A stretch of 61,352 bases of DNA, counting the filler, from Syncephalis fuscata S228 (Eukaryota; Fungi; Zoopagomycota): the NCBI GenBank assembly GCA_025786725.1. It is 3 parts of 3 records of this genome, joined end to end, with 100 filler letters (N's around TTAATTAATTAA, not from the genome) between each part and the next. Parts side by side here need not be neighbours in the genome. Positions count along the whole stretch, not along the records: positions 1 to 16,522 come from JAHLTZ010000199.1; 2 more parts are not named here. One strand, 5' to 3'. Each line of letters begins with the position of its first letter. Within the stretch, counting starts at the first letter, position 1. This document shows positions 1 to 16,522 of this stretch, in pieces. Both the position numbers and the translations under genes were made by a program. Under the pieces are notes generated by a model that saw only the letters and a list, made by a program, of their open reading frames with translations, did no database searches and was not told where the DNA came from.

Positions 1-435
1 TTGGTGCTGATGCTGATGCAGGTGCTGATGCCGGTGTTGGTGCTGGTGCTGGTGCAGGTGCAGGTGCTGGTGCCAATGCTGGTGTTGATGTTGGTGCTGG
101 TGTTGATGTTGGTGCTGGTGCTGATGCTGATGCCGGTGTTGGTGTTGGTGCTGATGCCGGTGCTGGTACTGGTGCTGGTGCTGGTGTCGATGTTGGTGCT
201 GGTGCTGGTGCTGGTGTTGGTGTTGGTGCTGGTGCTGATGCTGGTACTGGTGTTGGTGCTGATGCTGATGCTGATGCTGGTGTTGGTGCTGGTGCTGGTG
301 CTGGTGTTGATGTTGGTGCTGATGCCGGTGTTGGTGCTGGTGCTGATGTTGGTGTTGGTGCTGGTACTGGTGCTGGTGTTGATGCCGGTGTTGGTACTGG
401 TGCTGGTGTTGATGCCGGTGTTGGTACTGGTGTCC
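1..435. repeat. Degenerate hexamer microsatellite (GGTGCT/GGTGTT/GATGCT/GGTACT)n, copy 1, cut by window start
   Basis: Period-6 repeat visible directly; the (VL)n ORF is a by-product. Confidence 0.97.
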
Positions 436-939
436 GGCTATCTAAAATCTATAATAATCAATAAATGTTAGTGTTAGTGTCCGGTATCTAAAATTTAAAA
501 CAATATATGTATAAAGTTAGTATGTTGCAATGTTGTGTAGCCGGCCGCTAGCACACTAAAACAATTTGGTGATTTTTATTTATGATATAAATTTGTAATT
601 ATCAATACAGGTTAGTAAGTTAGTAATCTAAATCTAAAGTCATCAATATAGCATTAATTGTTATATTGTTTGGTAGCCGGCCGCTAACACACTAATCGCC
701 ATTGTCCTTGAACTTGATACTTGATGGCTTGTAAATCTAAAGCATTATATGCAGAGTTAGTGACTGATTTAAGTTAGTTACTTACCATTGCATAATCAGT
801 GCACCATAAAGAAGGACCGGTAAGTGGTTTGTTAAAGTGAAAAGGGAAAGAGAAGAAGAGCTGCCAATGCAACATCGTGCTAGCAGGTGTTTACAGGCAG
901 TGCATATAATGGCACTGCTGTATGGCCAGTACAGAGTGC

Positions 940-1280
940 TACTATATGCTACTACCGTAGCTAAACACACTATTGCTAGCACGGTGAGCAATGGAAGGTA
1001 TAGAGGTAATGATGAGGAGAGGGTGAGAAAGGAACAGTATATGCTTGGTAGCATATATCCAGCATACACTGTTGCTAGTACGATAAGTAATGGAAGGTTA
1101 GTGAAAAGGATGGGAAGAAGGTGGGAAAAGAAAGAGGATGATAACAGTGTATGCTTGGTAGCATATAGCCAGCATACACTGTTGCTAGTACGATAAGTAA
1201 TGGAAGGTTAGTGAAAAAAGGATGAAGAGAAAGAGGAAGAGAAAGAGAAAGATAACCGTATATGTTTGGTAGCATATATT
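940..1280. repeat. ~111-bp minisatellite with hairpin core and polypurine segment, copy 1
   Basis: Core TATGCTTGGTAGCATATA-CCAGCATACACTGTTGCTAGTACG-TAAGTAATGGAAGGTT recurs, separated by GA-rich stretches. Confidence 0.9.
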
Positions 1281-1321
1281 GCCACAGTTAGCATACTAGC
1301 AGCTGCCCACAAGGTAAAACG

Positions 1322-1365
1322 ATACCGCTAGCACTGCTGTATGGCGCCATACAGCAGGGCGGTAT
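1322..1365. other. GC-rich hairpin containing perfect 24-bp palindrome CTGCTGTATGGCGCCATACAGCAG (1334-1357)
   Basis: Self-complementary; outer arms ATACCGC/GCGGTAT; identical palindrome at 10454-10477 and 16123-16146. Confidence 0.92.
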
Positions 1366-1703
1366 GTAGTACCAGACTAGGCATGCTTATACTAATAGAC
1401 TAACAATGACATATAGCAAGCAAAGCATATACGACTTATGGAAACAAGTGCAAGTGGAAGGTGGCTAGTGGATAAATGCTGTCAAGTGTGGTGGATGAGA
1501 AAGAGGAACGTGTGACGCAAAGCGTGTGCTATGCGATCGGCAGTCTGTTTTTATAGTGTGGGTGCAAGTGCTGATGTAATATGAATAAACAATTATTATG
1601 ATTGGTGCCAATTGACTTGTTTGACAGCACTCGCCCAGTCAAACTAAACGTTTATTTTATTGAATAATCATTTTTATTAAATTATCAAATCATTAGATTA
1701 TAT

Positions 1704-2758
1704 TATGATTTGGGTGTCAAATGACTAAATTTAATAACATTCGCGCAATTGAACTGCACATTCAATCTATTGAACATGGGGACAAGTGGTGAGTTTTATT
1801 TAATCATCACATCATCACACTTATTGCTTTTTTGGGGGACAAATGACTAATATTTAATAACGCCCAATCTATTGAACATGATGATGGGTGGTGAGTGACA
1901 TCAGTCATCAAATACTCATCAGCATAGATTCGTTATCCAGTATGCATATATTCAGTACACATATATATATTATTTACCTATATTATTCCTGTACTATCCC
2001 ACACCATTGTATCCCATTCTACGATAGACTAGACACACTTTATTGTTAATATACACCAACAAACTCCATTCAGTCTACTCATTGCGCTATATGCACTATA
2101 GCTTTAACTTTATTTTATATGCTTTTTCACCGTACATTTATTATTCTATATATCATTCTATAATCGCTTAGCCTTCCTCTATCCAAATCTGTTTATACTT
2201 TTGTTCTAGCTTTATTATTAATAAATGTCGACTAATGTCGGTCATCTGCTCATGCATATATGCTCAATAACTTTAACATTGCTAATCGTTACTGCGTATT
2301 GCATATTCTTTATATTATATGCCGTTTTATTGTCTAATGACTACTGGCTATTTATTGCAGCTGTTCTTTTTGTTTTAGCTCTATTATTAACAAAGTTGAC
2401 TAATTTTGCTCAGCTTGCTTAATAGACTATATATTTATTTATTTAAAACTCATAGCAAACAGAATGTATTCAATATGTCATATAATGGTAATGATATAGG
2501 TAGATAGTATATATATGCATATTGGACAATAAATCTACAATGATGAGTATTTGATGACTGATGTCACTCACCACCCATCATCATGTTCAATAGATTGGGC
2601 GTTATTAAATATTAGTCATTTGTCCCCCAAAAAAGCAATAAGTGTGATGATGTGATGATTAAATAAAACTCACCACTTGTCCCCATGTTCAATAGAGTGA
2701 ATGTGCAGTGCAATTGCGCGAATGTTATTAAATTTAGTCATTTGACCCCCAAATCATA
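1704..2758. mobile_element. MITE/foldback-like non-coding element with ~218-bp inverted repeats
   Basis: 1704-1921 is the near-perfect reverse complement of 2541-2758; related copy at ~46290-47135; no credible ORF. Confidence 0.75.
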
Positions 2759-2827
2759 TTGAATTATTAATAAATTGCTATAAATGTAATAAACTTTATT
2801 ATAAAATAAGTTTATTCAAAAATATTT

Positions 2828-5727
2828 TTAATTATTGGCTGTTTGAACAAACTGCATTTTTCGTTGTGCCACGACGTATAATTTGCTCTTAGCACATTTA
2901 GGAATAATAGGATAGTGGCTTCTAAGATATTCAAGACACGCCAAACGAAAGTTTATAAACTCCTCTTTAACATCATTCTGGCGTGCGAGTATTATGTATG
3001 CTGTTCTTGCACCGTGCTTGCTCCATCTCCCGCTTTTATGTGGATGGCTCGTGTCAATGGGATCTTCTTCAATAACAGCATGGGAGGGAAAATACCATTT
3101 CTCTGTCCAGGTCTCGTAATAGTTAGATGTTGTTAATTGAACGCTTTTTTTCTAAATGAATAAATAGCAAAGTTAATTATGTTCAATGAAGTATTAAACA
3201 AAACAGCTTAAATATTTACAATCAGCTTAAGGTGAAAATCCGCTTCGTTGGAGAATATTCGTCGTCCAAATCTATTAAAGCCTTCTTTATGTTCCTCCTT
3301 TACAAATTCATCCCACTTGTACATAGTAAACACTTCATCCATATAAAGGTCAACAAAAGGCGCCACATTTCCTGGCCCAAGACGATGAGTACAGAAATAT
3401 TGACAGGCTTTATCAAAATGATAGTGTTCAGTCTTAATATGCTTGTGATATTGGCAATCATCCACTTCTAAGTTGAATTTATAAACTGGGCCACTCGGCA
3501 GACTATTAATGATAGGCAATGATTCGGCTACATCAGTAAAAGTATCAGTATCAGAGATATTAGTTAAAGCTACAGTAATCCTGTCAGTTTCGAATTGGCT
3601 AAATTCAAAAATGGCTTTCAGTTTATCAACAGTATAAATGTCACTTGTTGACCAACGATTATCATCTGAATTAGACTCGATAAGGTTAGGAAGAAAACAA
3701 GCACTAGAATCTAGACGGCGATGGTTTTTTAACGTTTGGCCGACAGTGTCGCGCCACTGAGATCTGTCCATCGGGCGGTGGAATACTGCCGATAACATAT
3801 AGCTAAGCTGGGCAATAAAAGACAGGTGTTGATCTGAGTATCTGTTGCTGACCGAAAGATAATTTGTCTCTACCAGATACCACAAAGCGTTAATTCTATT
3901 GCCAGCATAGGACCAAAGCTGATCAGAATAATTCCAAACAACTTTTTCGTACACTTCAAGTCTATAAATAAAAATGTTAGCAAGTATAGTAATTTAAATT
4001 TATATATTACCCAAATTTGTCTTCTATGTTTTGAATGTCGGTATTAAACTCGGCCATAATTAACCGAAATTCAAAACGAACACCATAATTCTTCTTTTTC
4101 ATCAATTCGATATTTTTTTCGATTAATTTCTAAAAAGAAATTAATTACAAATCAATAATTAACCATAATTTTGCAAGCACTTACTATAAACTTAATGGCA
4201 CCTCTGCCTTTTTCAAGTACTTCATTTGGGCTGAAATCACGTCCATGACGATCAGAATTACCTGAAGCTCGTGTATAGAAGGCGTGTTTGCTCAGGCTGT
4301 AGACTTGCATATTTATCAGCCTCGAGCGAACAGTGTTGGTGTGTTTAAAACCACCAAAATTTTCAAAGTTGCAAAAACTATCATAACGACGAGTTGCTAT
4401 GAATATAGGTGAAAAAGTCAGTAAACAATAAAATATGATTTGGCAAAACGCATATATATATATATTCTAGCTTACCACTAGCCAAACGGATGGGATCATC
4501 ACTAAAAAAATGAAAAGCAATGTCATCATGGTCTTTAACAAAACCAGTTAACGGATAATTACATTCGATAGGTAAAATAGAAAATCCAACATCAATATAT
4601 GTTTTATCTAAAGGGATAATGTCCCAATTTAAGTTGAAAGTTTCTAATATTTTTCTAGGCGAATGCAGTGAAATAATACCTTCATCAGGGTACCTTTTTT
4701 TAAATCCTAGTCCCCAAACGATGAAAAAAAATGAATCAAAGTCCTTGGTATCAGGATTATTTAATATTATTCTACGCATTTGCGTAAGAAGTTCGTCTAC
4801 TGTATCGGAATGTAAACTAACGCTAGTGTTTACTTGAGTAGAATCGTATGATAAAGGAACAGACAAAACTTCACTGTCAGATAAATTATTAAGGGCAGGT
4901 ATAAGTACCGAATCCACAAAAAGCTTATGAGTAGCTTGATCAACAGCATATGTATGCTTTGTTTGATTCAAGGATCGCTTATAATACAAGGCGGGAAAAC
5001 ATATTACAACCTATAATTAAACAATAGTAAAAGCACCAATGATTAGCTTAAATAAAACGTATTTTTGTATACATTACCTGTAATTTACCGAATTTAGCAA
5101 AATTTAAATTTGGTATATGGAATATTTTAACGTCTTCACCTTTTGTTAATGTATGGTGATTATAAACAACGCCGGTATCAGACTTGTAAGAGAAATTGTA
5201 ATTGGCCCTGACCATTATATCGATGTCACAAGATGTGACAGGTATTGTTTTAATTTCATCGCAAACTATCGCAATTGAATCAATGTCTCGACGTATTTTA
5301 GTTTTGGGAGATTCATCAGAAAAGTTTTTAACACAATATTTGTTTTTTAAATCACCAGACACTCCTTGAATATGTGTACGGACATAATTAATATTTCTAA
5401 GATGATAAGGGGCATTGCTTTGCTTATGATCATGCTCTTGAGTGTATCCCTCAAACACGCTGATATTCATACTGCCTATAGTGAAGCTGAAGTTAGAGTC
5501 GTTGCTACAAATTGTACAATATACAGATTAAAATGATACTTACATGTTGAATCATCAGAGGTTATAGGCACGGGACTACTATTCAATTGTTTGACACGAG
5601 CACGCTTGAATAAAGAAGTAGTATTAGGCTGATTAGCTACACTAGAAGTAGATTGATCAGCTACACTAGAAGCGGGTTGCTCAACGCGAGCACGCTTGGC
5701 AAAATACGTAGTAATGAGAGAGGACAT
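2828..5727 (-). CDS. Uncharacterised 837-aa protein, 7 exons (5727-5544, 5475-5078, 5010-4476, 4396-4185, 4129-4011, 3961-3220, 3151-2828); probably mobile-element associated
   Basis: Six GT-AG introns join the ORF-track fragments into one open frame of 2514 nt; motifs RRDIDS, HIPN, CFPAL, YIDVG, MQVYSLSK, YGVRFEFR; embedded in the tandem macro-repeat. Confidence 0.85.
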
Positions 5728-6809
5728 TTGAGTATTTTTTGCTTAATGTAACCTGATGAGATACACTAAGTATGCAGATTACTTGGACAAGTGACAAAGC
5801 ATAAGTTAGAGAAAATAAATGTAAATTTGTATAAAAATTGATAATGTTTTTATTTGTGATAACTGGTGTGTTTATATATTGCTCTAGTTGATAGCTAGTA
5901 TCGGAGTAGAACAATATACAAGAAAATAAAATAATAAAAATAAAAATAAAAATAAAAAAAAAAATAAAAATAGTATTTGCCATGTGTGACTGACTAGTAA
6001 TTTAGTGGCCACGGAAATGGCCACTTTGTTACAATGTTACTGTAACAAAATGAAGGTGTATGCGCATGTTATTTTGCTAAAATAATAATAACATATTTCA
6101 ACACCACCATTCATTTAACAATAGTACTAGTATTTTATTTAAACGTCATTTGTATTGTGTTACGTTAATATTTAATAAGCTGTTAATAATTTGGTAATCA
6201 AATCATTACATTTAATAATACTTATTCCATTGAATATAATGCTAGGTGATGAATAACATCAATCATCAAGCCATTTAATTACAATCCGATTTATAATAAA
6301 ATGACTAATTTAATAATATTTGTCCCATTAAAACCTGCCATTCGTTCTATTGGATATAGAACTGGTGGTGAGTGGTACCAGCTGTCAAAATACTTATTAT
6401 CGTGGATTTATTATCCAGTACACATCTATATTTTATTTACATATATCACTATAATTGTATTGAAACACTACTATATAGCATCATATGATACACTAGACAC
6501 ATTTTGTTTATTATATGCGGCAACACACCTCACTTAATCCACTTATTACGCTGTACATTCATTATATTGTATGCCATTTATTGTATAATGCGTAAGAGCT
6601 ATGCAACACCATTGCTGTTTTGCTTCTAGATCTATTATTAAATAAGCGCGTGTTTATGTTTTAGGGCTTTTTATAACAAAAGCGTACCTTAATGTTAAAC
6701 CCTTTTGTGAGGGCACTTGAAATGGCCATAGTGGTACACTGTAACTTATCACTGTAAATTTGACGTTGTATACCATATGTGTTTTATTTTATAGCGTGTT
6801 GTTGTATAT

Positions 6810-7895
6810 TGTTATACAGTATAATGGCCACGCTCTATCGATTGGCGCTGTCCATTTTACGCTAGCTTTATAGTTGAAACTGGCCATTCCTTACACTCAG
6901 TTCGCTAATTACCATATTACGCAGTCACAATTGGACACACTAAAAAATTAATAGTAAATTAACGAAAAAATATACAGCAAATCCGATTGGTTCTGCGTAC
7001 TCAGACGACAATTCTGGTTATAATGGATCAATAAAATGCGATGTGTAAATATTTATTGTTTTTATTCAGAATTGTATATGCATATCATAGCAATATTGGT
7101 CAAATATTGGTAAAAATAATAAGTATACAAATAAATTTGTTTATTTATTGCTATAATTTGTTTATTATGATAGTGTGTTGATTGTTGTATGGTATACTGG
7201 CTACTGGGGGTCAATTCGGCCTATTCTAGTGCAGTCATTGCAGTCATTGCAGTAATTTCAGCTAATGACCAGTCAGTATGGTTCTTGCAGGTCATTACTC
7301 GTAGTTCAGCTACCGTATTTTGTTTGTTTTGTTTGTTTTACGTAGTTTACGCATCACTCGCTTCCCCTGCGTTGTTTTTACGTATTTATCTATGTAATGG
7401 TCACTTTACTCGTTGTATTTTACTCATATTGGCCTCAATCTGCACAGCACATTGCCACAGCACTACTGCTTGAGTGGCACCTTCCTAATATGAAGCCATT
7501 AGCGTGACCGTTTTTCGAACTCCAATACTAGGTCCCGTAGTGGTAGAACCCTTTTGTCTCTCTCTTCTCTTGTTGTTGTCTTGTTGTTGTTCTATTGTCG
7601 TTGTTCTTGTTGTTTTTTAACTCGCTATCGCTCGTATAGTTGTTCTGTAACTTCTTGTTCATTTTCCTTCATTTTTCATTTTTGTCTTATTTTTCTTATT
7701 TTAGCCCTATTTTATCAAGCCCTATCTTCATTAGCCCTAAATATTTGTCAAATAATTGTCAAAAATATTTTCAAAAAAAAATAAAAAAAAATCGTTGTCT
7801 GTTTTATTGTTGTTTCTTCATCTCCTGTTCATTCTGTTTCATTGTCCCCTACTCTCATGTCATTTGAGCTATTATTTCTCGAGTTATTCATTGTT
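6810..7895. repeat. Macro-repeat block C, copy 1 (second copy ~11035-12138)
   Basis: Near-identical ~1.1-kb direct repeat. Confidence 0.93.
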
Positions 7896-7929
7896 AATGT
7901 CAATATGTGGTGTCTTAAAGTTCACTTCA

Positions 7930-8880
7930 ACCCGATGCAATACATCATATATGTGAGGTAATAATTAATATAAATCATTGCATGTTATAAGCACTATAAC
8001 ATACTGACATGAATGAGTCGTGTATATTGCTTCCTACAATTAATATGATATACACACGATATCATACAATGATATATGTAAATACTGGATGTATGCATAT
8101 TGAGTATATGCTCTCTGGATATATGCTTACTGGATAATACATCTACATTAATGTCTATTTTATATTTTATTTATTCATCATCCATTATCATGTTCAGTAC
8201 ATTAAATGCTTTTAAATATTGCCATTTGATCTGCTGATCATACTATAAGCATTGTTAAATTGTTTAATCATTAGTTAGTATGCGCAATATATACTAATTG
8301 TATAATCTTTATTGTATTGATTTTTTGATTGAGATGCAAAAATATAAACCTTTGCATCTACTTATTTAATAGCTATGTGCTTTTATTTAATGCTTTGCTC
8401 GGATATTGTTTGGTAATATCAATTACTAATCACTTGGATATTCCAATAAATAATATATTATTAATTGATCCAATATCCTTTTTTAATCTTGCTGTTAATT
8501 GATAGCAATAGTATCAATTAGTCTTGATGATGTCACATCAAGTACTTGTGAAGTTGCTATTGTTGCTATTGTTGCTATTGTTGTGATGGTATACCACCGT
8601 TTATTGGTGGCGATATACCACCACATACAAATTATGATGGATACTGCTACAACTGCTGTATCACATTACTTACTTATTTAAAATCGCGATTAGTGTGTTA
8701 GCGGCCGGCTACCTACAATTCTAAAATAATAAATACAATGTTAGTACGTTAGTAGACAATTGTCCTGAATTGTTATTGCATATTTGGTTTTAGTGTGCTA
8801 GCGGCCGGCTATGTATAATAATAATACTTACGCTGGTGTCCATGGCCGGCTACCTACGATTCTAAAATAATAAATACAAT
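7930..8880. repeat. Macro-repeat block D, copy 1 (second copy ~13313-14298)
   Basis: Near-identical ~0.95-kb direct repeat immediately preceding each hexamer tract. Confidence 0.93.
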
Positions 8881-9440
8881 GTTAGTGTTAGTGTTGATGC
8901 CAATGTTGATGTTGTTACTATGTTGGTGCCGGTGCCGGTGCCGATGTTGATACTGGTACTGGTGCCATGCTGGTGTTGATGTTGATGCTGGTGCTGATGC
9001 TGGTGCTGGTGTTGGTGCTGGTGTCGATGTTGGTGCTGGTGCTGGTGCTGATGCTGGTGCTGATGCTGGTGTTGGTGCTGGTGCGGTGCTGGTGCTGGTG
9101 TTGGTGTTGGTGCTGATGCTGGTGTTGGTGCTGATGCCGGTGTTGGTGTTGGTGCTGATGCCGGTGCTGGTACTGGTGCTGGTGCTGATGTCGGTGTTGG
9201 TGCTGGTGCTGGTGCTGATGTGGTGCTGGTTGGTGCTGGTGCTGATGCTGGTGTTGGTGTTGGTGCTGATGCTGGTGTTGGTGCTGATGCTGGTGTTGGT
9301 GCTGGTGCTGGTGCTGGTGGATGTTGGTGCTGATGCCGGTGTTGGTGCTGGTGTTGGTGCTGTTGGTGCTGGTACTGGTGTTGGTGTGATGCCGGTGTTG
9401 GTACTGGTGCTGGTGTTGATGCTGGTGTTGGTACTGGTGT
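8881..9440. repeat. Degenerate hexamer microsatellite, copy 2
   Basis: Same GGTGYT-type period-6 repeat, with several phase slips. Confidence 0.97.
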
Positions 9441-10900
9441 CCGGCTATCTAAAATCTATAATAATCAATAAATGTTAGTGTTAGTATCCGGTATCTAAAA
9501 TTTAAAACAATATATGTATAAAGTTAGTATGTTGCAATGTTGTGTAGCCGGCCGCTAGCACACTAAAACAATTTGGTGATTTTTATTTATAATATAAAGC
9601 TGTAATTATCAATACAGGTTAGTAAGTTAGTAATCTAAATCTAAAGTCATCAATATAACATTAATTGTTATATTGCTTGGTAGCCGGCCGCTAACACACT
9701 AATCGCCATTGTCCTTGAACTTGATACTTGATGGCTTGTAAATCTAAAGCATTATATGTAGAGTTAGTGACTGATTTAAGTTAGTTACTTACCATTGCAT
9801 AATCAGTGCACCATAAAGAAGGACCGGTAAGTGGTTTGTTAAAGTGAAAAGGGAAAGAGAAGAAGAGCTGCCAATGCAACATCGTGCTAGCAGGTGTTTA
9901 CAGGCAGTGCATATAATGGCACTGCTGTATGGCCAGTACAGAGTGCTACTATATGCTACTACCGTAGCTAAACACACTATTGCTAGCACGGTGAGCAATG
10001 GAAGATATAGAGATAATGATGAGGAGAGGGTGAGAAAGGAACAGTATATGCTTGGTAGCATATATCCAGCATACACTGTTGCTAGTACGGTAAGTAATGG
10101 AAGGTTGGTGAAAAGGATAGGGAAGAAGGAGTAAAGTGAAAGAGGATGAGAATAGTGTATGCTTGGTAGCATATAGCCAGCATACACTGTTGCTAGTACG
10201 GTAAGTAATGGAACGTTGGTGAAAAGGATAGGGAAGAAGGAGTAAAGAGAAAGAGGATGAGAACAGTGTATGCTTGGTAGCATATATCCAGCATACACTG
10301 TTGCTAGTACGGTAAGTAATGGAAGGTTGGTGAAAAAAAGGATGAAGAGAAAGAGGAAAAGAAAGAGGAAGATAACGGTATATGTTTGGTAGCATATATT
10401 GCCACAGTTAGCATACTAGCAGCTGCCCACAAGGTAAAACGATACCGCTAGCACTGCTGTATGGCGCCATACAGCAGGGCGGTATGTAGTACCAAGACTA
10501 GGCATGCTTATACTAATAGACTAACAATGACATATAGCAAGCAAAGCATATACTGAACTTATGGAAACAAGTGCAAGTGGAAAGGTGGCTAGTGGATGAA
10601 TGCTGTCAAGTGTGGTGGATGAGAAAGAGGAACGTGTGACGCAAATCGTGTGCTATGCGATCAGCAGTCTGTTTTTATAGTGTGGGTGCAAGTGCTGATG
10701 TAATATGAATAAACAATTATTATGATTGGTGCCAATTGCCTTGTTTGACAGCACTCGCCCAGTCAAACTAAACGTTTATTTTATTGAATAATCATTTTCA
10801 TTAAATTATTAAATCATTAGATTATATTATGATTTGGGGGTCAAATGACTATATTGATAACATTCGCGTAGTTGAACTGCACATTCAATGTATTGAACAT
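9438..10900. repeat. Macro-repeat block B, copy 2, with one extra 111-bp minisatellite unit
   Basis: Aligns to 433-1770. Confidence 0.95.
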
Positions 10901-11034
10901 GATGGTGGATGGTAAGTGACGTCAATCATCAAATACTCATTGTTGTAAATGTATTGTCCAATATGCATATATCTTCCATTTACTTGCATTATTCACATTC
11001 TGTTTATGCTGTACACTTTCCATTCCATGCTCAT

Positions 11035-12138
11035 TTTATTAGACATCATTATACAGTATACTGGCCATGCTCTATCGATTGGCGTTGTCCATTTGACCAT
11101 AGCTTTATAGTTGAATTGGACATTCATTACACTCATTTCGCTAATTACCGTGTTTACGCAGTCACAATTGGACACACTAAAAAATTAATAGTAAATTAAC
11201 GAAAAAATATACAGCAAATCCGATTGGTTCTGCGTACTCAGACGACAATTCTGGTTATAATAAGCCAATAAAATGCGATGTGTAAATATTTATTGTTTTT
11301 ATTCAGAATTGTATATGCATATCATAGCAATATTGGTCAAATATTGGTAAAAATAATAAGTATACAAATAAATTTGTTTATTTATTGCTATAATTTGTTT
11401 ATTATGATAGTGTGTTGATTGGTGTATGGTATACTGGCTACTGGGGGTCAATTTGGCCTATTCTAGTGCAGTCATTGCAGTCATTGCAGTAATTTCAGCT
11501 AATGACCAGTCAGTATGGTTCTTGCAGGTCATTACTCGTAGTTCAGCTACCGTATTTTGTTTGTTTTGTTGTTTTACGTAGTTTACGCATCACTCGCTTC
11601 CCCTGCGTTGTTTTTACGTATTTATCTATGTAATGGTCACTTTACTCGTTGTATTTTACTCATATTGGCCTCAATCTGCACAGCACATTGCCACAGCACT
11701 ACTGCTTGAATGGCACCTTCCTAATATGAAGCCATTAGCGTGACCGTTTTTCGAACTCCAATACTAGGTCCCGTAGTGGTAGAACCCTTGTATTGTCTCT
11801 CTCTTCTCTTATTGTCGTTGTCATTGTCGTTGTTCTATTGTCGTTGTTCTTGTTGTTTTCTAACTCGCTATCGCTCGTATAGTTGTTCTCTAGCTTCTTG
11901 TTCATTTTCCTTCATTCTTCATTTTTGTCTTATTTTTCTTCTTTTAGCCCTATTTTATCAAGCCCTATCTTCATTAGCCCTAAATATTTGTCAAATAATT
12001 GTCAAAAATATTTTCAAAAAAAATAAAAAAAATCGTTGTCTGTTTTATTGTTGTTTCTTAATCTCCTGTTCATTCTGTTTCATTGTCACCTACCCTCATG
12101 TCATTTGTGCTAATATTTATCGAGTTATTCATTGTTAA
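11035..12138. repeat. Macro-repeat block C, copy 2
   Basis: Aligns to 6810-7895. Confidence 0.93.
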
Positions 12139-12139
12139 A

Positions 12140-13310
12140 GTTCATTTTTGTGGCTGTGTTCATTTTATCCATTATTCAACCATTTAGTCTATTATTCTAC
12201 TCTTTAGTCAATATTCACTTATTTAGTTTATTCTTCAATTATTTAGTCAATTATACCATTATTCAATTCTTTAGTCAATTATTCAATTATTTAGTCTATT
12301 ATTCAAATACTTAGTCAATTATACCTTTATTCAAATACTTAGTCAATTATACCTTTATTCAAATACTTAGTCAATTATTCCGTTGTTTAGTCCATTATTC
12401 AGTTAGTTAGTCTACTGGGCAATTATCGGCTAATTATTGCCATTTTTACTCAAATATTGCGGAAATTGGCCTACTAGTAAAAGTATGTCAGTATACATGC
12501 TATAACATTCAAATAGCTTGCAAAGCATTGCTTAGTTGATGCTATATCTTGCATATAAACATCTATGGCTTTGGTGCTAAATTGTGCTAAAATAAATATA
12601 TTAAAATGTGGTGGCCTAAACTACCTATGCTTCACACTATCTATACTTCAGTTGTTCAGTTAGTTAGTCTGTCTGTCATTTAATTTGTTAGTTGGTCAAT
12701 CTGTCGGTTAGTTAGTTTGTTAGTTGGTCATTTAATCAATTAGTTTTTGTCTGTCTGTCTGTCTATTATTCCATTATTTAGTTTGTCTGTCTATCTGTCA
12801 TTTAATGCTTACTCAATCCGTTAGTTGACCAGTCTGTCGATCTGTCAACCATTCTGTTATTTAGTCTATTGTTCAATCATTTATGCAATTGGTTGTCTAC
12901 TTCTTATATTGTTGATTATTAATGTCTACGAATTAGTCGCTTGTTAGTCTGTATATTGTTAGTCAATTAGTTGGGAAATTATGCCAACTAGTTAGTCAAT
13001 ATTTGGTCAATTAGTTGGTCAATTAGTTAGTCGTTTATTCAATTGGTTGATCATTTAGTTGTTCAGTTGGGCAATTAGTTGCTTATTTAGTTATTCAATT
13101 TGTCCGTCAATTAGTCAATCACTCATTTATTCAAATAATTACATATTTATTTGCTCCATTATTCAATTAGTATATGTCTGTCAATATATGTTCTATAACA
13201 ATAATTAATTCAAAGTATTGTTTAGTTAATGTTACATCTGTGTATATAAACGTACATAACTTTTATGGTAATGAGTGCTAAATTCTATTATTCAATATAT
13301 GAATGTCAAT
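12140..13310. repeat. Low-complexity TTAGTCAA/ATTCAA-rich degenerate repeat, present only in unit 2
   Basis: 28-bp tandem ATTCAAATACTTAGTCAATTATACCTTT at 12301, 12329 and partially 12357; absent between blocks C and D of unit 1. Confidence 0.8.
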
Positions 13311-13312
13311 CT

Positions 13313-14298
13313 ACCGATGCAATACATCATATATGTGAGGTAATAATTAATATAAATCATTGCATGTTATAAGCACTATAACATACTGACATGAATGAGT
13401 CGTGTATATTGCTTCCTACAATTAATATGATATACACACGATATCATACAATGATATATGTAAATACTGGATGTATGCATATTAAGTATATGCACACTGG
13501 ATATATGCTTACTGGATAATAATCTACATTAATGTCTATTTTCTATTTTATTTATTCATCATCCATTATCATGTTCAGTACATTAAATGCTTTTAAATAT
13601 TGCCATTTGATCTGCTGATCATACTATAAGCATCATTAAATTGTTTAATCATTAGTTAGTATGTGCAACACATACTAATTGTATAATATTTATTGTCACA
13701 ATTCACTTGATTAAATACAATAAACTATATTGTATTGATTTTTTGATTGAGATGCAAAAGTATAAAGCTTTGCATCTACTTATTTAGTAGCTATGTGCTT
13801 TTATTTAATGCTTTGCTTGGATATTGTTTGGTAATATCAATTACTAATCACTTGGATATTACCAATAAATAATATATTATTAATTGATCCAATATCTTTT
13901 TTAATCTTGCTGTTAATTGATAGCAATAGTATCAATTAGTCTTGATGATGTCACATCAAGTACTTGTGAAGTTGCTATTGTTGCTATTGTTGCTATTGTT
14001 GTGATGGTATACCACCGTTTATTGGTGGCGTATACCACCACATACAAATTATGATGGATACTGCTACAACTGCTGTATCACATTACTTACTTATTTAAAA
14101 TCGCGATTAGTGTGTTAGCGGCCGGCTACCTACAATTCTAAAATAATAAATACAATGTTAGTACGTTAGTAGACAATTGTCCTGAATTGTTATTGCATAT
14201 TTGGTTTTAGTGTGCTAGCGGCCGGCTATGTATAATAATAATACTTACGCTAGGTGTCCATGGCCGGCTACCTACGAATCTAAAATAATAAATACAAT
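13313..14298. repeat. Macro-repeat block D, copy 2
   Basis: Aligns to 7930-8880. Confidence 0.93.
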
Positions 14299-15186
14299 GT
14301 TAGTGTTAGTTTTTATGCCAATGTTAATATTGTTACTGGTGTTGGTGCTGGTACTGGTGTTGGTGTTGATACTGGTGCTGGTACTGGTACTGATGTTGGT
14401 GTTGATGCCGGCGCTGATGCTGATGTTGGTGCTGATGACGGTGCTGGTGCTGGTGCCGATGTTGGTGCTGATGCTGGTGTTGGTACTGGTGTTGATGCTG
14501 GTGTTGGTACTGGTGCTGGTGCTGGTGCCGATATTAGTGTTGGTGCTGGTGCCGATGTTGGTGCCGATGCTGGTGTTGTTGTTGGTACTGGTGCTGGTGC
14601 CGATGTTAGTGTTGGTGCTGGTGCCGATGTTGGTGCCGGTGCTGATGTTGGTGTTGGTGCCGGTGCCGGTGCTGGTATTGATGTTGGTGTTGGTACTGGT
14701 GTTGATGCTGGTACTGGTGTTGGTGTTGGTACTGGTATTGGTGCTGATGCCGGTGCTGGTACTAGTATTGGTGTTGATGCCGATGTTGGTGCTGGTGCTG
14801 GTGCTGGTACTGGTGTTGGTGCCGGTGCCGGTGCTGGTATTGATGTTGGTGTTGGTACTGGTGTTGGTGCCGGTGCCGGTGTTGGTGTTGGTACTGGTAT
14901 TGGTGCTGATGCCGGTGCTGGTACTAGTATTGGTGTTGATGCCGATGTTGGTGCTGGTGCTGGTACTGGTGTTGGTGCCGGTGCCGGTGCTGGTATTGAT
15001 GTTGGTGTTGGTACTGGTGCTGGTGCTGGTATTGATGTTGATGTTGGTGCTGGTGCTGGTGTTGGTACTGGTGTTGGTGCCGGTGTCGATGTTGGTACTG
15101 ATGTTGGTGCTGGTGCTGATGTTGATGTTGGAGTTGGTGCCGATGCTGTTACTGGAGTTGGTGCTGATGTTGGTATTGGTGTGTCG
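14299..15186. repeat. Degenerate hexamer microsatellite, copy 3 (longest)
   Basis: Period-6 repeat with internal higher-order duplications. Confidence 0.97.
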
Positions 15187-15189
15187 GTA

Positions 15190-16522
15190 TTCAGCTATCT
15201 AAATCTATAATAATCAATAAATGTTAGTGTTAGTGTCCGGTATCTAAAATTTAAAACAATATATGTATAAAGTTAGTATGTTGCAATGTTGTGTAGCCGG
15301 CCGCTAGCACACTAAAACAATTTGGTGATTTTTATTTATGATATAAATTTGTAATTATCAATACAGGTTAGTAAGTTAGTAATCTAAATCTAAAGTCATC
15401 AATATAGCATTAATTGTTATATTGTTTGGTAGCCGGCCGCTAACACACTAATCGCCATTGTCCTTGAACTTGATACTTGATGGCTTGTAAATCTAAAGCA
15501 TTATATGCAGAGTTAGTGACTGATTTAAGTTAGTTACTTACCATTGCATAATCAGTGCACCATAAAGAAGGACCGGTAAGTGGTTTGTTAAAGTGAAAAG
15601 GGAAAGAGAAGAAGAGCTGCCAATGCAACATCGTGCTAGCAGGTGTTTACAGGCAGTGCATATAATGGCACTGCTGTATGGCCAGTACAGAGTGCCACCA
15701 TATGCTACTACCATAGCTAAACACACTATTGCTAGCACGGTGAGCAATGGAAGATATAGAGATAATGATGAGGAGAGTGTGAGAAAGGAACAGTATATGC
15801 TTGGTAGCATATATCCAGCATACACTGTTGCTAGTACGGTAAGTAATGGAAGGTTGGTGAAAAGGATGGGGAAGAAGGAGAGATGAGAAAGAGGATAAGA
15901 ACAGTGTATGCTTGGTAGCATATAGCCAGCATACACTGTTGCTAGTACGGTAAGTAATGGCACGTTAGAAAAAAGAAGGATGAAGAAAAGAATGAAGAAG
16001 AAAAGAGAAAGAATGAGGAAGAGAAAGAGAAAGAGAAAGAGAACGTTATATGTTTGGTAGCATATATCCATCATAGCTAGCATACTAGCAGCTGCTCACA
16101 AGGCAAAACGACACCGCTAGCACTGCTGTATGGCGCCATACAGCAGGGCGGTATGTAGTACCAAGACTAGGCATGCTTATACTAATAGACTAGCAATGAC
16201 ATATAGCAAGCAAAGCATATACCGGACTTATGGAAACAAGTGCAAGTGGGAACGTGGCTAGTGGATAAATGCTGTCAAGTGTGGTGGATGAGAAAGAGGA
16301 ACGTGTGACGCAAATCGTGTGCTATGCGATCGGCAGTCTGTTTTTATAGTGTGGGTGCAAGTGCTGATGTAATATGAATAAACAATTATTATGATTGGTA
16401 CCAATTGACTTGTTTGACAGCACTCGCCCAGTCAAACTAAACGTTTATTTTATTGAATAATCATTTTCATTAAATTATCAAATCATTAAATTATATTATG
16501 ATTTGGGTGTCAAATGACTATA
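15190..16522. repeat. Macro-repeat block B, copy 3, cut by the gap
   Basis: Aligns to 433-1730. Confidence 0.95.

Follow-up and report, generated by a model that had tools for sequence, protein, structure and literature searches.

Head-to-tail arrays in Syncephalis fuscata of a candidate gene-plus-palindrome element with gene-less derivatives

The subtelomeric Y' elements of Saccharomyces cerevisiae form head-to-tail arrays, occur in long and short size classes and have simple-repeat tracts between their units. They have one large expressed open reading frame (ORF), lie in a fixed polarity to the chromosome end and spread by recombination and through circles. Single-gene nuclear plasmids of the Ddp2 type combine one large gene with repeat and palindrome cis-elements in a unit of 4.5-6 kb, and FB of Drosophila is an example of a foldback element, or miniature inverted-repeat transposable element (MITE) with long terminal inverted repeats (TIRs). 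The mobile DNA of early-diverging fungi has been little charted. We analyzed a stretch of 61,352 nucleotides from the zoopagomycotan fungus Syncephalis fuscata S228 (the window), of which positions 1-16522 are contig C111 (JAHLTZ010000199.1) of a 29.36-Mb draft assembly in 371 contigs. C111 consists of a macro-repeat which combines a gene for an 837-amino acid (aa) orphan protein with a 24-bp palindrome, a minisatellite and a simple-sequence tract. We propose, with a probability of roughly 45%, that this macro-repeat is a conserved gene-plus-palindrome element which forms arrays and has gene-less derivatives. All S. fuscata sequence was taken from the single draft assembly, and read evidence is at the contig level only.

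The S. fuscata arrays resemble those of Y' elements in being head to tail, in containing simple tracts and a large expressed ORF, and in having a fixed polarity to the contig end. They differ in an ORF that does not encode a helicase, in tracts that are distinct from telomere repeats and have their G-rich strand wrongly oriented, and in at least ten single copies that lie in the interior of contigs; no telomere is seen in the assembly. C111 holds 2.3 units head to tail, in AT-rich sequence with short GT-AG introns. The 300-nt blocks at 445, 9452 and 15201 are 98-100% identical and are spaced by exactly 9007 and 5749 bp. A previous reading of the window from its sequence alone (the sequence-only reading) had described these periods and the order of the modules exactly. 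Each unit contains a (TGGTGC)n tract, blocks B, C and D with a perfect 24-bp palindrome, and a block P before the tract, and we define P-tract-B-C-D, about 3 kb long, as the core. In unit 1, block B (433-1024, plus strand) has two GTAGCCGGCCGCTA motifs (537 and 673) and an 80-nt hairpin at about 887-967 (fold z -2.4) which is nearly invariant in 21 copies; at least 36 copies of this block with 92-99% identity are present genome-wide. Block C (1025-1278, plus strand) is a minisatellite of 110/111 bp with a hairpin of ~40 nt per minisatellite unit (fold z -3.9; 39 copies aligned), and the same minisatellite is found at 10039-10399 and 15788-15987. Block D (1279-1671, plus strand) contains the palindrome CTGCTGTATGGCGCCATACAGCAG at 1334-1357. 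Blocks B-C-D are repeated on the plus strand in unit 2 (9440-10827, with three minisatellite units and the palindrome at 10454-10477) and in unit 3 (15194-16522, cut by the contig end, with the palindrome at 16123-16146).

The gene is located in unit 1 at positions 2828-5727 on the minus strand, as supported by sequence and RNA contigs, and the exon model of the sequence-only reading proved right to the residue. Its seven exons (5727-5543, 5474-5078, 5010-4476, 4396-4185, 4129-4011, 3961-3220, and 3151-2828) add up to 2514 nt, representing 837 codons and a stop codon. Three of the six predicted introns are seen as joints in RNA contigs (3151>3220, 3961>4011, and 5474>5543) with CT..AC ends, which correspond to GT-AG on the minus strand, and the largest exon matches an annotated partial protein (KAI9595941.1) with 99% identity. 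The genome contains five copies of the gene, three of them intact (C111, C35, and C247) and two decayed (C215 and C266). Compared to the C111 copy, the ratio of synonymous to nonsynonymous differences is 11:9 for C35 and 10:8 for C247, without stops or frameshifts. Replacements are thus far below the neutral expectation of about 3:1, indicating purifying selection on the gene. The gene is real, expressed and functional. All five copies reside in arrays, within the same macro-repeat context and together with the repeat blocks, a co-occurrence which the sequence-only reading had proposed to look for.

Searches for a function were carried out with one exon at a time, and the database model P0001 stood in for the joined spliced protein. 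No domain was recognized by Pfam in any of the exons or in the other ORFs of the window, which agrees with the claim that motifs of transposases, reverse transcriptases (RTs), integrases and Rep-helicases are not to be seen here. The exon translations contain no Walker-type motif, and ESM-Atlas feature searches of the protein returned no usable function. A weak caspase-like match of one exon is the only functional hint that was obtained from these searches.

The perfect palindrome (at 1334, 10454, and 16123; zero expected by shuffling; hairpin z -5.4) is nearly invariant in 22 sampled S. fuscata copies, and old copies with a block B identity of only ~73-77% retain it except for one mismatch. 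Old block B relatives with a one-mismatch palindrome were located at C35:65880 and C46:552274, and no gene copy was detected near them. The arrangement of gene, palindrome and tract was also found with homologs of the gene in other organisms. In L075, a metagenome contig of 29 kb (ENA), a homolog at about 1194-4600 lies between two direct repeats (4-338 and 5680-5988), which are ~5.67 kb apart and have blocks that are 98% identical. Both repeats are composed of palindrome, 14-bp minisatellite and poly-T tract, and a Ty3 element follows. In L076 and L077 (JGI metagenome, Logan run; contigs of 4.4-4.6 kb), a 27-nt palindrome comes after the single gene, with poly-T at the contig end. Read in the orientation of the gene, the order in the three lineages is gene, palindrome and simple tract, with the minisatellite between the latter two in the window and in L075. 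A motif ATGGC-N(0-5)-GCCAT is found a single time in each unit of the window (1341, 10461, and 16130), in each repeat of L075 (9 and 5685), and in each of L076 and L077, while 0.01-0.05 are expected per sequence; it is not present in five Rhizopus loci. With the S. fuscata core taken as given, chance is an unlikely explanation for the presence of the motif at the corresponding position in two more lineages. Dictyostelium plasmids of the Ddp2 family are named in PMC11962162. With a unit of 5.67 kb in L075 and of ~4.5 kb in L076, the likeness to these plasmids is one of layout. The S. fuscata units differ from them in being integrated in chromosomal contigs of 0.27-0.67 Mb and are known as integrated copies only.

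A HMMER search with the 248-aa exon against 1.84 billion representatives retrieved only seven proteins, one of which was the S. fuscata protein itself. The other family members are about 30% identical and consist of hypothetical proteins of Rhizopus arrhizus and R. delemar and of metagenomic and Logan proteins. Metagenome and viral scans added one more homolog contig of 1.3 kb (L078, skin metagenome) and none that is viral. In the searches made, homologs are confined to early-diverging fungi. An hmmscan of 15 homologs gave no Pfam match (E <= 5), and an alignment-profile search returned the query's own protein only. In tblastn searches with single exons, Rhizopus and two metagenomic lineages had exons 2-7 in colinear order, indicating a shared architecture of ~750-840 aa and truncated annotated models in Rhizopus. 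The conserved blocks are FFxxTWGxGxK, LDLG, RxDPF..GGFK..YSxSK..YxR..ERHGxDF, and HRPxxRSxW, and the block in exon 4 contains invariant Tyr, Lys, Arg, His, and Asp residues. Rhizopus has at least ten paralog clusters with 60-87% identity, many of which are found on contigs of 1.6-6 kb or beside Tc1 transposases. A syntenic pair of Rhizopus orthologs (L072-L074 versus L041-L044) shares just 67% protein identity despite conserved neighbors, from which we infer that the family evolves fast.

In the S. fuscata assembly, the 24-bp palindrome marks 39 cores (28 perfect, eight with one mismatch, and three with two), and a reversed control gave none. Arrays similar to that of C111 are present on C35, C168, C50, C174, C215, C247, C290, and C325, with a spacing of ~4.5-13.3 kb and variable modules. 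The four large contigs which end in an array all have the same polarity, namely unique DNA-X-D-C-B-tract-P-K-J-contig end, in which X is a foldback MITE and J and K are further blocks described below. In addition, at least ten gene-less single cores lie inside the large contigs C1, C2, C13, C24, C157, C168, C223 (twice), C306, and C328. The flanks of each single core are unique among the sampled loci, and one dispersed copy (L033) has no hexamer tract. With 39 cores and about 1000 X candidates, the family accounts for many contig breaks and calls for masking and annotation. In sequencing run X7, which carries the same species label, the X arm was found at high depth over window positions 1-6000 and the core and gene were essentially nil at >=95% identity. 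This contrast could reflect a strain or species difference in the presence of the family.

X itself is an independent, high-copy foldback-type MITE that is unrelated to the core. The copy inserted in unit 1 (1672-2795) has arms at 1704-1968 and 2494-2758 around a 525-nt loop (M). The arms are 265 nt long, 93% complementary and built of subrepeats of ~120 nt, with one or two per arm, and the loop is found in either orientation among copies. X encodes nothing, and an autonomous partner was not identified. A first look yielded 1027 candidates genome-wide, and solo copies (L045-L062) share termini which lie ~35 nt outside the motif TTTGGGGGTCAAATGAC. The subrepeat arms around a loop that flips and the very high copy number are as in foldback elements. 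In contrast to these, X is non-coding and only a component of the units and a landing site, not the amplified core.

The position of X at the dispersed cores amounts to an integration footprint. On either side, every dispersed core touches an outer terminus of X. The median divergence between loci is 6.0% for block B, 4.8% for block D, and 7.1% for block P, and 19% for the flanking X loops. The two X copies of one locus diverge by 0-5%, and over longer repeats the within-locus pairs are 98.5, 97.3, 93.9, 93.3, and 89.4% identical. A maximum likelihood tree, built without the two rows L060 (paralogous copy of the same locus) and L055 (local duplicate, identical in sequence), shows the X copies at cores interspersed with solo X copies. 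Monophyly of the core-associated copies is rejected by the approximately unbiased (AU) test, both for the full set (p = 5e-5) and for the dispersed copies alone (p = 3e-4). The divergence of X and the AU test place a young core between duplicated old X copies, and young cores thus lie between duplicates of old, locus-specific MITEs. Such young DNA between duplicated resident MITEs is a footprint that is not predicted by standard models of transposition. Campbell integration of an X-bearing circle predicts hybrid, dissimilar flanking X copies and was rejected on the observed pairs (0-5%), as was gap repair from an array template, which predicts the same. Ends-in gapped homologous integration via the X arms would fit the footprint, and so would insertion between staggered nicks at both X termini followed by fill-in. 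A candidate empty site was considered on C17, a paralog or haplotig of the C168:118k locus which is 97.8% identical and lacks 4.77 kb including the core. C17 also lacks the outer 95 nt of the X arm and has a 7-nt microhomology at the junction, indicating a deletion and not a pre-insertion site. The two regions (L065, C17:5500-15499; L032, C168:113900-123899) are colinear and 97.6-97.9% identical over more than 5 kb except for the 4.77-kb indel, and C17 could represent a haplotig or have arisen by recent segmental duplication.

Structure prediction gave a lead on the possible function of the protein. An AlphaFold2 model of P0001 (11 alignment rows) had a predicted local distance difference test score (pLDDT) of 34 and was unusable, and a model of the Rhizopus paralog P0023 (22 rows) had a pLDDT of 47.7, with moderate confidence for residues ~188-515. 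In a Foldseek search of the PDB with the P0023 model, no match was significant; the top matches were RepDE structures (4cwc_A and 4cwe_A; E 0.12-0.2, probability 0.25-0.30), and rank 23 was taken by a third protein of the Rep_trans type. A shape search of the ESM Atlas with the same model placed Rep_trans clusters in rows 1 and 6 (template modeling (TM) scores of 0.36 and 0.29, match-normalized). With VIA-align, RepDE aligned with Z 5.4-5.5 over model residues ~292-477, the region with the GGFK..YSxSK block, and a wide search with this tool returned helical-bundle noise only. The family motif FIRxxxYSxSK may resemble the active-site motif of Rep_trans proteins. The likeness to Rep_trans initiators (pT181/RepD type) thus consists of a weak top fold match, a palindrome beside the gene and concatemer-like arrays. 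The differences are that the S. fuscata protein is eukaryotic, intron-bearing and 837 aa long, that its arrays are chromosomal and that there is no match by sequence or hidden Markov model (HMM).

A different explanation, which we regard as possible though somewhat doubtful, is that of a passive segmental array. According to this explanation the macro-repeat is a macro-satellite in heterochromatin rich in transposable elements (TEs), subtelomere- or pericentromere-like, which arose by unequal crossing-over and happens to contain an orphan host gene; its cores were spread by ectopic recombination or gene conversion through X, and the protein is uninvolved. Several results agree with it and weigh against an element. 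The unit is a mosaic of the unrelated repeats X and J1, the arrays stand at contig ends with one polarity on four large contigs, and a Ty3/gypsy element (gag, RT, RNase H, and integrase) adjoins the arrays, lying distal to them on C168 and C50; passive duplication is common in TE-rich DNA, so that this setting counts in favor of the passive array. One Rhizopus homolog lies in a conserved host context among ordinary genes, with synteny (anoctamin, gene, kinase) in both R. arrhizus and R. delemar. No target-site duplication (TSD), no X-independent element terminus and no true empty site were found at the examined core loci, the C17 locus being best explained by a microhomology deletion. The palindrome motif was defined post hoc, which inflates the significance of its recurrence, and a clean wrap-around of the L076 contig is doubtful (overlap of 7 nt only). 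The protein has no recognizable mobility domain, as no catalytic domain was found by Pfam, PDB sequence or profile searches. The fold matches are weak (E 0.12, TM 0.23-0.36), tied with unrelated helix-grip folds and within the stated noise of VIA-align, and the PF02486 (Rep_trans) HMM gave no match at E <= 10 in the whole genome, with a positive control in Bacillus subtilis; the Rep_trans likeness is therefore a lead and not a finding. However, a passive array leaves several observations unexplained. These are the order of gene, palindrome and simple tract in two other lineages, one of them with direct repeats, the near-invariant palindrome even in copies of ~75% identity, the young cores (5-7% divergence) between old locus-specific X duplicates, and the sole residence of a selected and expressed gene in arrays. 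Moreover, no telomere repeat backs a subtelomeric position. Because the layout, the constraint on the palindrome, the residence of the gene in arrays and the footprint are not accounted for by passive duplication, we favor an array-forming element.

The footprint also bears on whether the core is the cargo of a composite (macro-)transposon, carried between two foldback MITEs by a putative X transposase acting on the outermost arms. The outer X termini do abut every dispersed core on both sides, and L029 and L037 have a common arm deletion and X variant, indicating that X-core-X was copied whole at least once. The core-flanking X copies are polyphyletic among solo X, however, and their loops are three to four times more diverged between loci than the cores, indicating that X generally did not travel with the core; with no TSD identified, and with the gene association and the layout across species left unexplained, we consider a composite transposon unlikely. 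The sequence-only reading had suggested an affinity to Helitrons, Helentrons and DINE-1. Tandem arrays, hairpins, a central microsatellite and a large excess of gene-less over gene-bearing copies are indeed as in Helitron/Helentron and DINE-1/HINE families, and the weak fold likeness is to rolling-circle initiators, though of a different class. This affinity was not supported: neither the gene nor the rest of the window encodes an HUH Rep or SF1 helicase domain, and no Rep-helicase was found in the ORFs and exons of the window or in 15 homologs. The subterminal inverted repeats that had been ascribed to the element belong to the independent MITE X. Core ends abut X termini in every copy, and neither independent 5' and 3' ends nor an empty site could be defined from the dispersed copies. 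A search of the genome with Helitron_like_N gave no match, but its positive control gave no signal either. A Helitron-type family with DINE-1-like non-autonomous copies is, in our judgment, very improbable. For a DDE-type TIR transposon, the window shows no DDE domain and no TSD, and its only long inverted repeats are X. Regarding LTR (long terminal repeat), DIRS and Penelope elements, no RT is present in the window, and RT was found only in the neighboring Ty3 element on other contigs. A collapsed or chimeric contig deserves thought in a draft of 371 contigs in which C111 starts and ends within repeats. Against such an artifact, which we find scarcely credible, the units vary in tract length, minisatellite number and modules and are 96-99% and not 100% identical, the same junctions occur on independent contigs including those of 0.27-0.67 Mb, and independent read-derived contigs cover the modules.

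If the array-forming element is accepted, its history may be pictured as follows. In the ancestral unit, a single large gene would have preceded a palindromic site, a minisatellite and a tract of simple sequence. This unit would have acquired X and the J1 repeat as secondary insertions in S. fuscata, and most head-to-tail units would have lost the gene and persist as cores of ~3 kb. The 837-aa protein, presumably nuclear, would recognize the palindrome and promote replication or recombination of unit-length DNA as circles or concatemers. These would yield head-to-tail arrays, and gene-less cores would be amplified in trans. New copies may enter at resident X MITEs in a homology- or nick-dependent manner, thereby duplicating X on both sides. 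That the protein mobilizes the repeat, as had been proposed from the sequence, would follow from this scheme. In a stronger and rather improbable form, the 837-aa family would represent a new eukaryotic initiator or nickase, distantly Rep_trans-like and acting on the ATGGC..GCCAT palindrome. It would define a new class of rolling-circle or episome-derived tandem-array elements in Zoopagomycota and Mucoromycota, with gene-less cores that are mobilized in trans and land in foldback MITEs. The macro-repeat would represent a selfish element of a new class or, alternatively, a subtelomere-like array of a new kind that amplifies a gene; a selfish element of this type would possibly be the first case in which eukaryotes use a non-HUH initiator of the rolling-circle type.

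The remaining parts of C111 show how heterogeneous the units are. An incomplete and diverged (~76%) copy of X, termed X' (6210-6650, plus strand), lies upstream of the gene. It is followed by J1 (6698-7557, plus strand), a separate dispersed repeat of ~0.75-0.86 kb that forms the first part of block J and recurs at 11049-11789. Matches to J1 on other contigs number at least 25, with 82-83% identity, and three copies stand in tandem on C35 (C35:656531-658947); J1 possibly represents a solo LTR or a non-autonomous element of another kind. Block P of unit 1 (7932-8923, plus strand) begins with a degenerate X arm and contains inverted copies of GCGGCCGGC (8699 and 8799). In unit 2, all that is left of X is a short arm remnant of ~145 nt (10828-10972), followed by block J (11049-12138, plus strand; 96% match to 6812-7900), block K (12142-13313, plus strand) and block P (13314-14320, plus strand), the last identified by internal repeat comparison. 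Block K is ~1.2 kb long, rich in minisatellites of 20, 28, and 32 bp, not present in unit 1 and found in other arrays. Unit 2 therefore lacks the gene and keeps the tract, minisatellite and palindrome, as had been noticed from the sequence, but not the nested inverted repeat that had been attributed to it. Since J1 and X are separate dispersed repeats, the unit is a mosaic and not one clean element. The idea of one undescribed family with gene-bearing and gene-less units is partly supported; the likeness to Helitrons and DINE-1 and the part assigned to the inverted repeats are not.

The hexamer tracts were detected by tandem-repeat calls. T1 (2-432) is a (TGGTGC)n tract with G>A and C>T variants (TRF period 6, 71.8 copies) in which the contig starts. 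T2 is found at 8924-9439, and T3 (14322-15182) is the longest and has higher-order periods of 18-96. In each unit the tract sits between direct repeats of ~50 nt which end in AATGTTAGTGTTAGTG. A coding role of the tract was rejected, as several frames are open yet the frame shifts inside unit 2. A telomeric origin was rejected as well, on account of the direct-repeat flanks and an orientation opposite to that of a telomere, the G-rich strand running inward at contig ends; (TTAGGG)4 was not found in the whole assembly. Rfam covariance-model and tRNA searches gave only sub-threshold matches to microRNA-like hairpins and no tRNA. A variant with a 109/110-bp deletion between the two GTAGCCGGCCGCTA motifs of block B (window 562-672) occurs in both DNA- and RNA-derived contigs, indicating a copy variant and not an intron.

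The Ty3/gypsy element mentioned above lies at L018:5720-9611 at the right end of C168 and likewise in L025 (C50). Its gag has a zinc knuckle, and a 23-bp minisatellite (14.7 copies) precedes the element. A 26-bp satellite (AGCGCAAATGCTGGCACATAATGCTT)n of 1.7-2 kb, ~99% homogeneous, was found at most 1-2.5 kb from two dispersed cores (L036:1315-3325 on C157 and L039:8050-9808 on C328). At L032:2640-2906 (C168:116.5k), a GC-rich segment of ~270 nt with tRNA-like boxes of the GGTTCGAA type is placed between an X terminus and the X copy that flanks a dispersed core, and this segment could be an insert resembling a short interspersed nuclear element (SINE).

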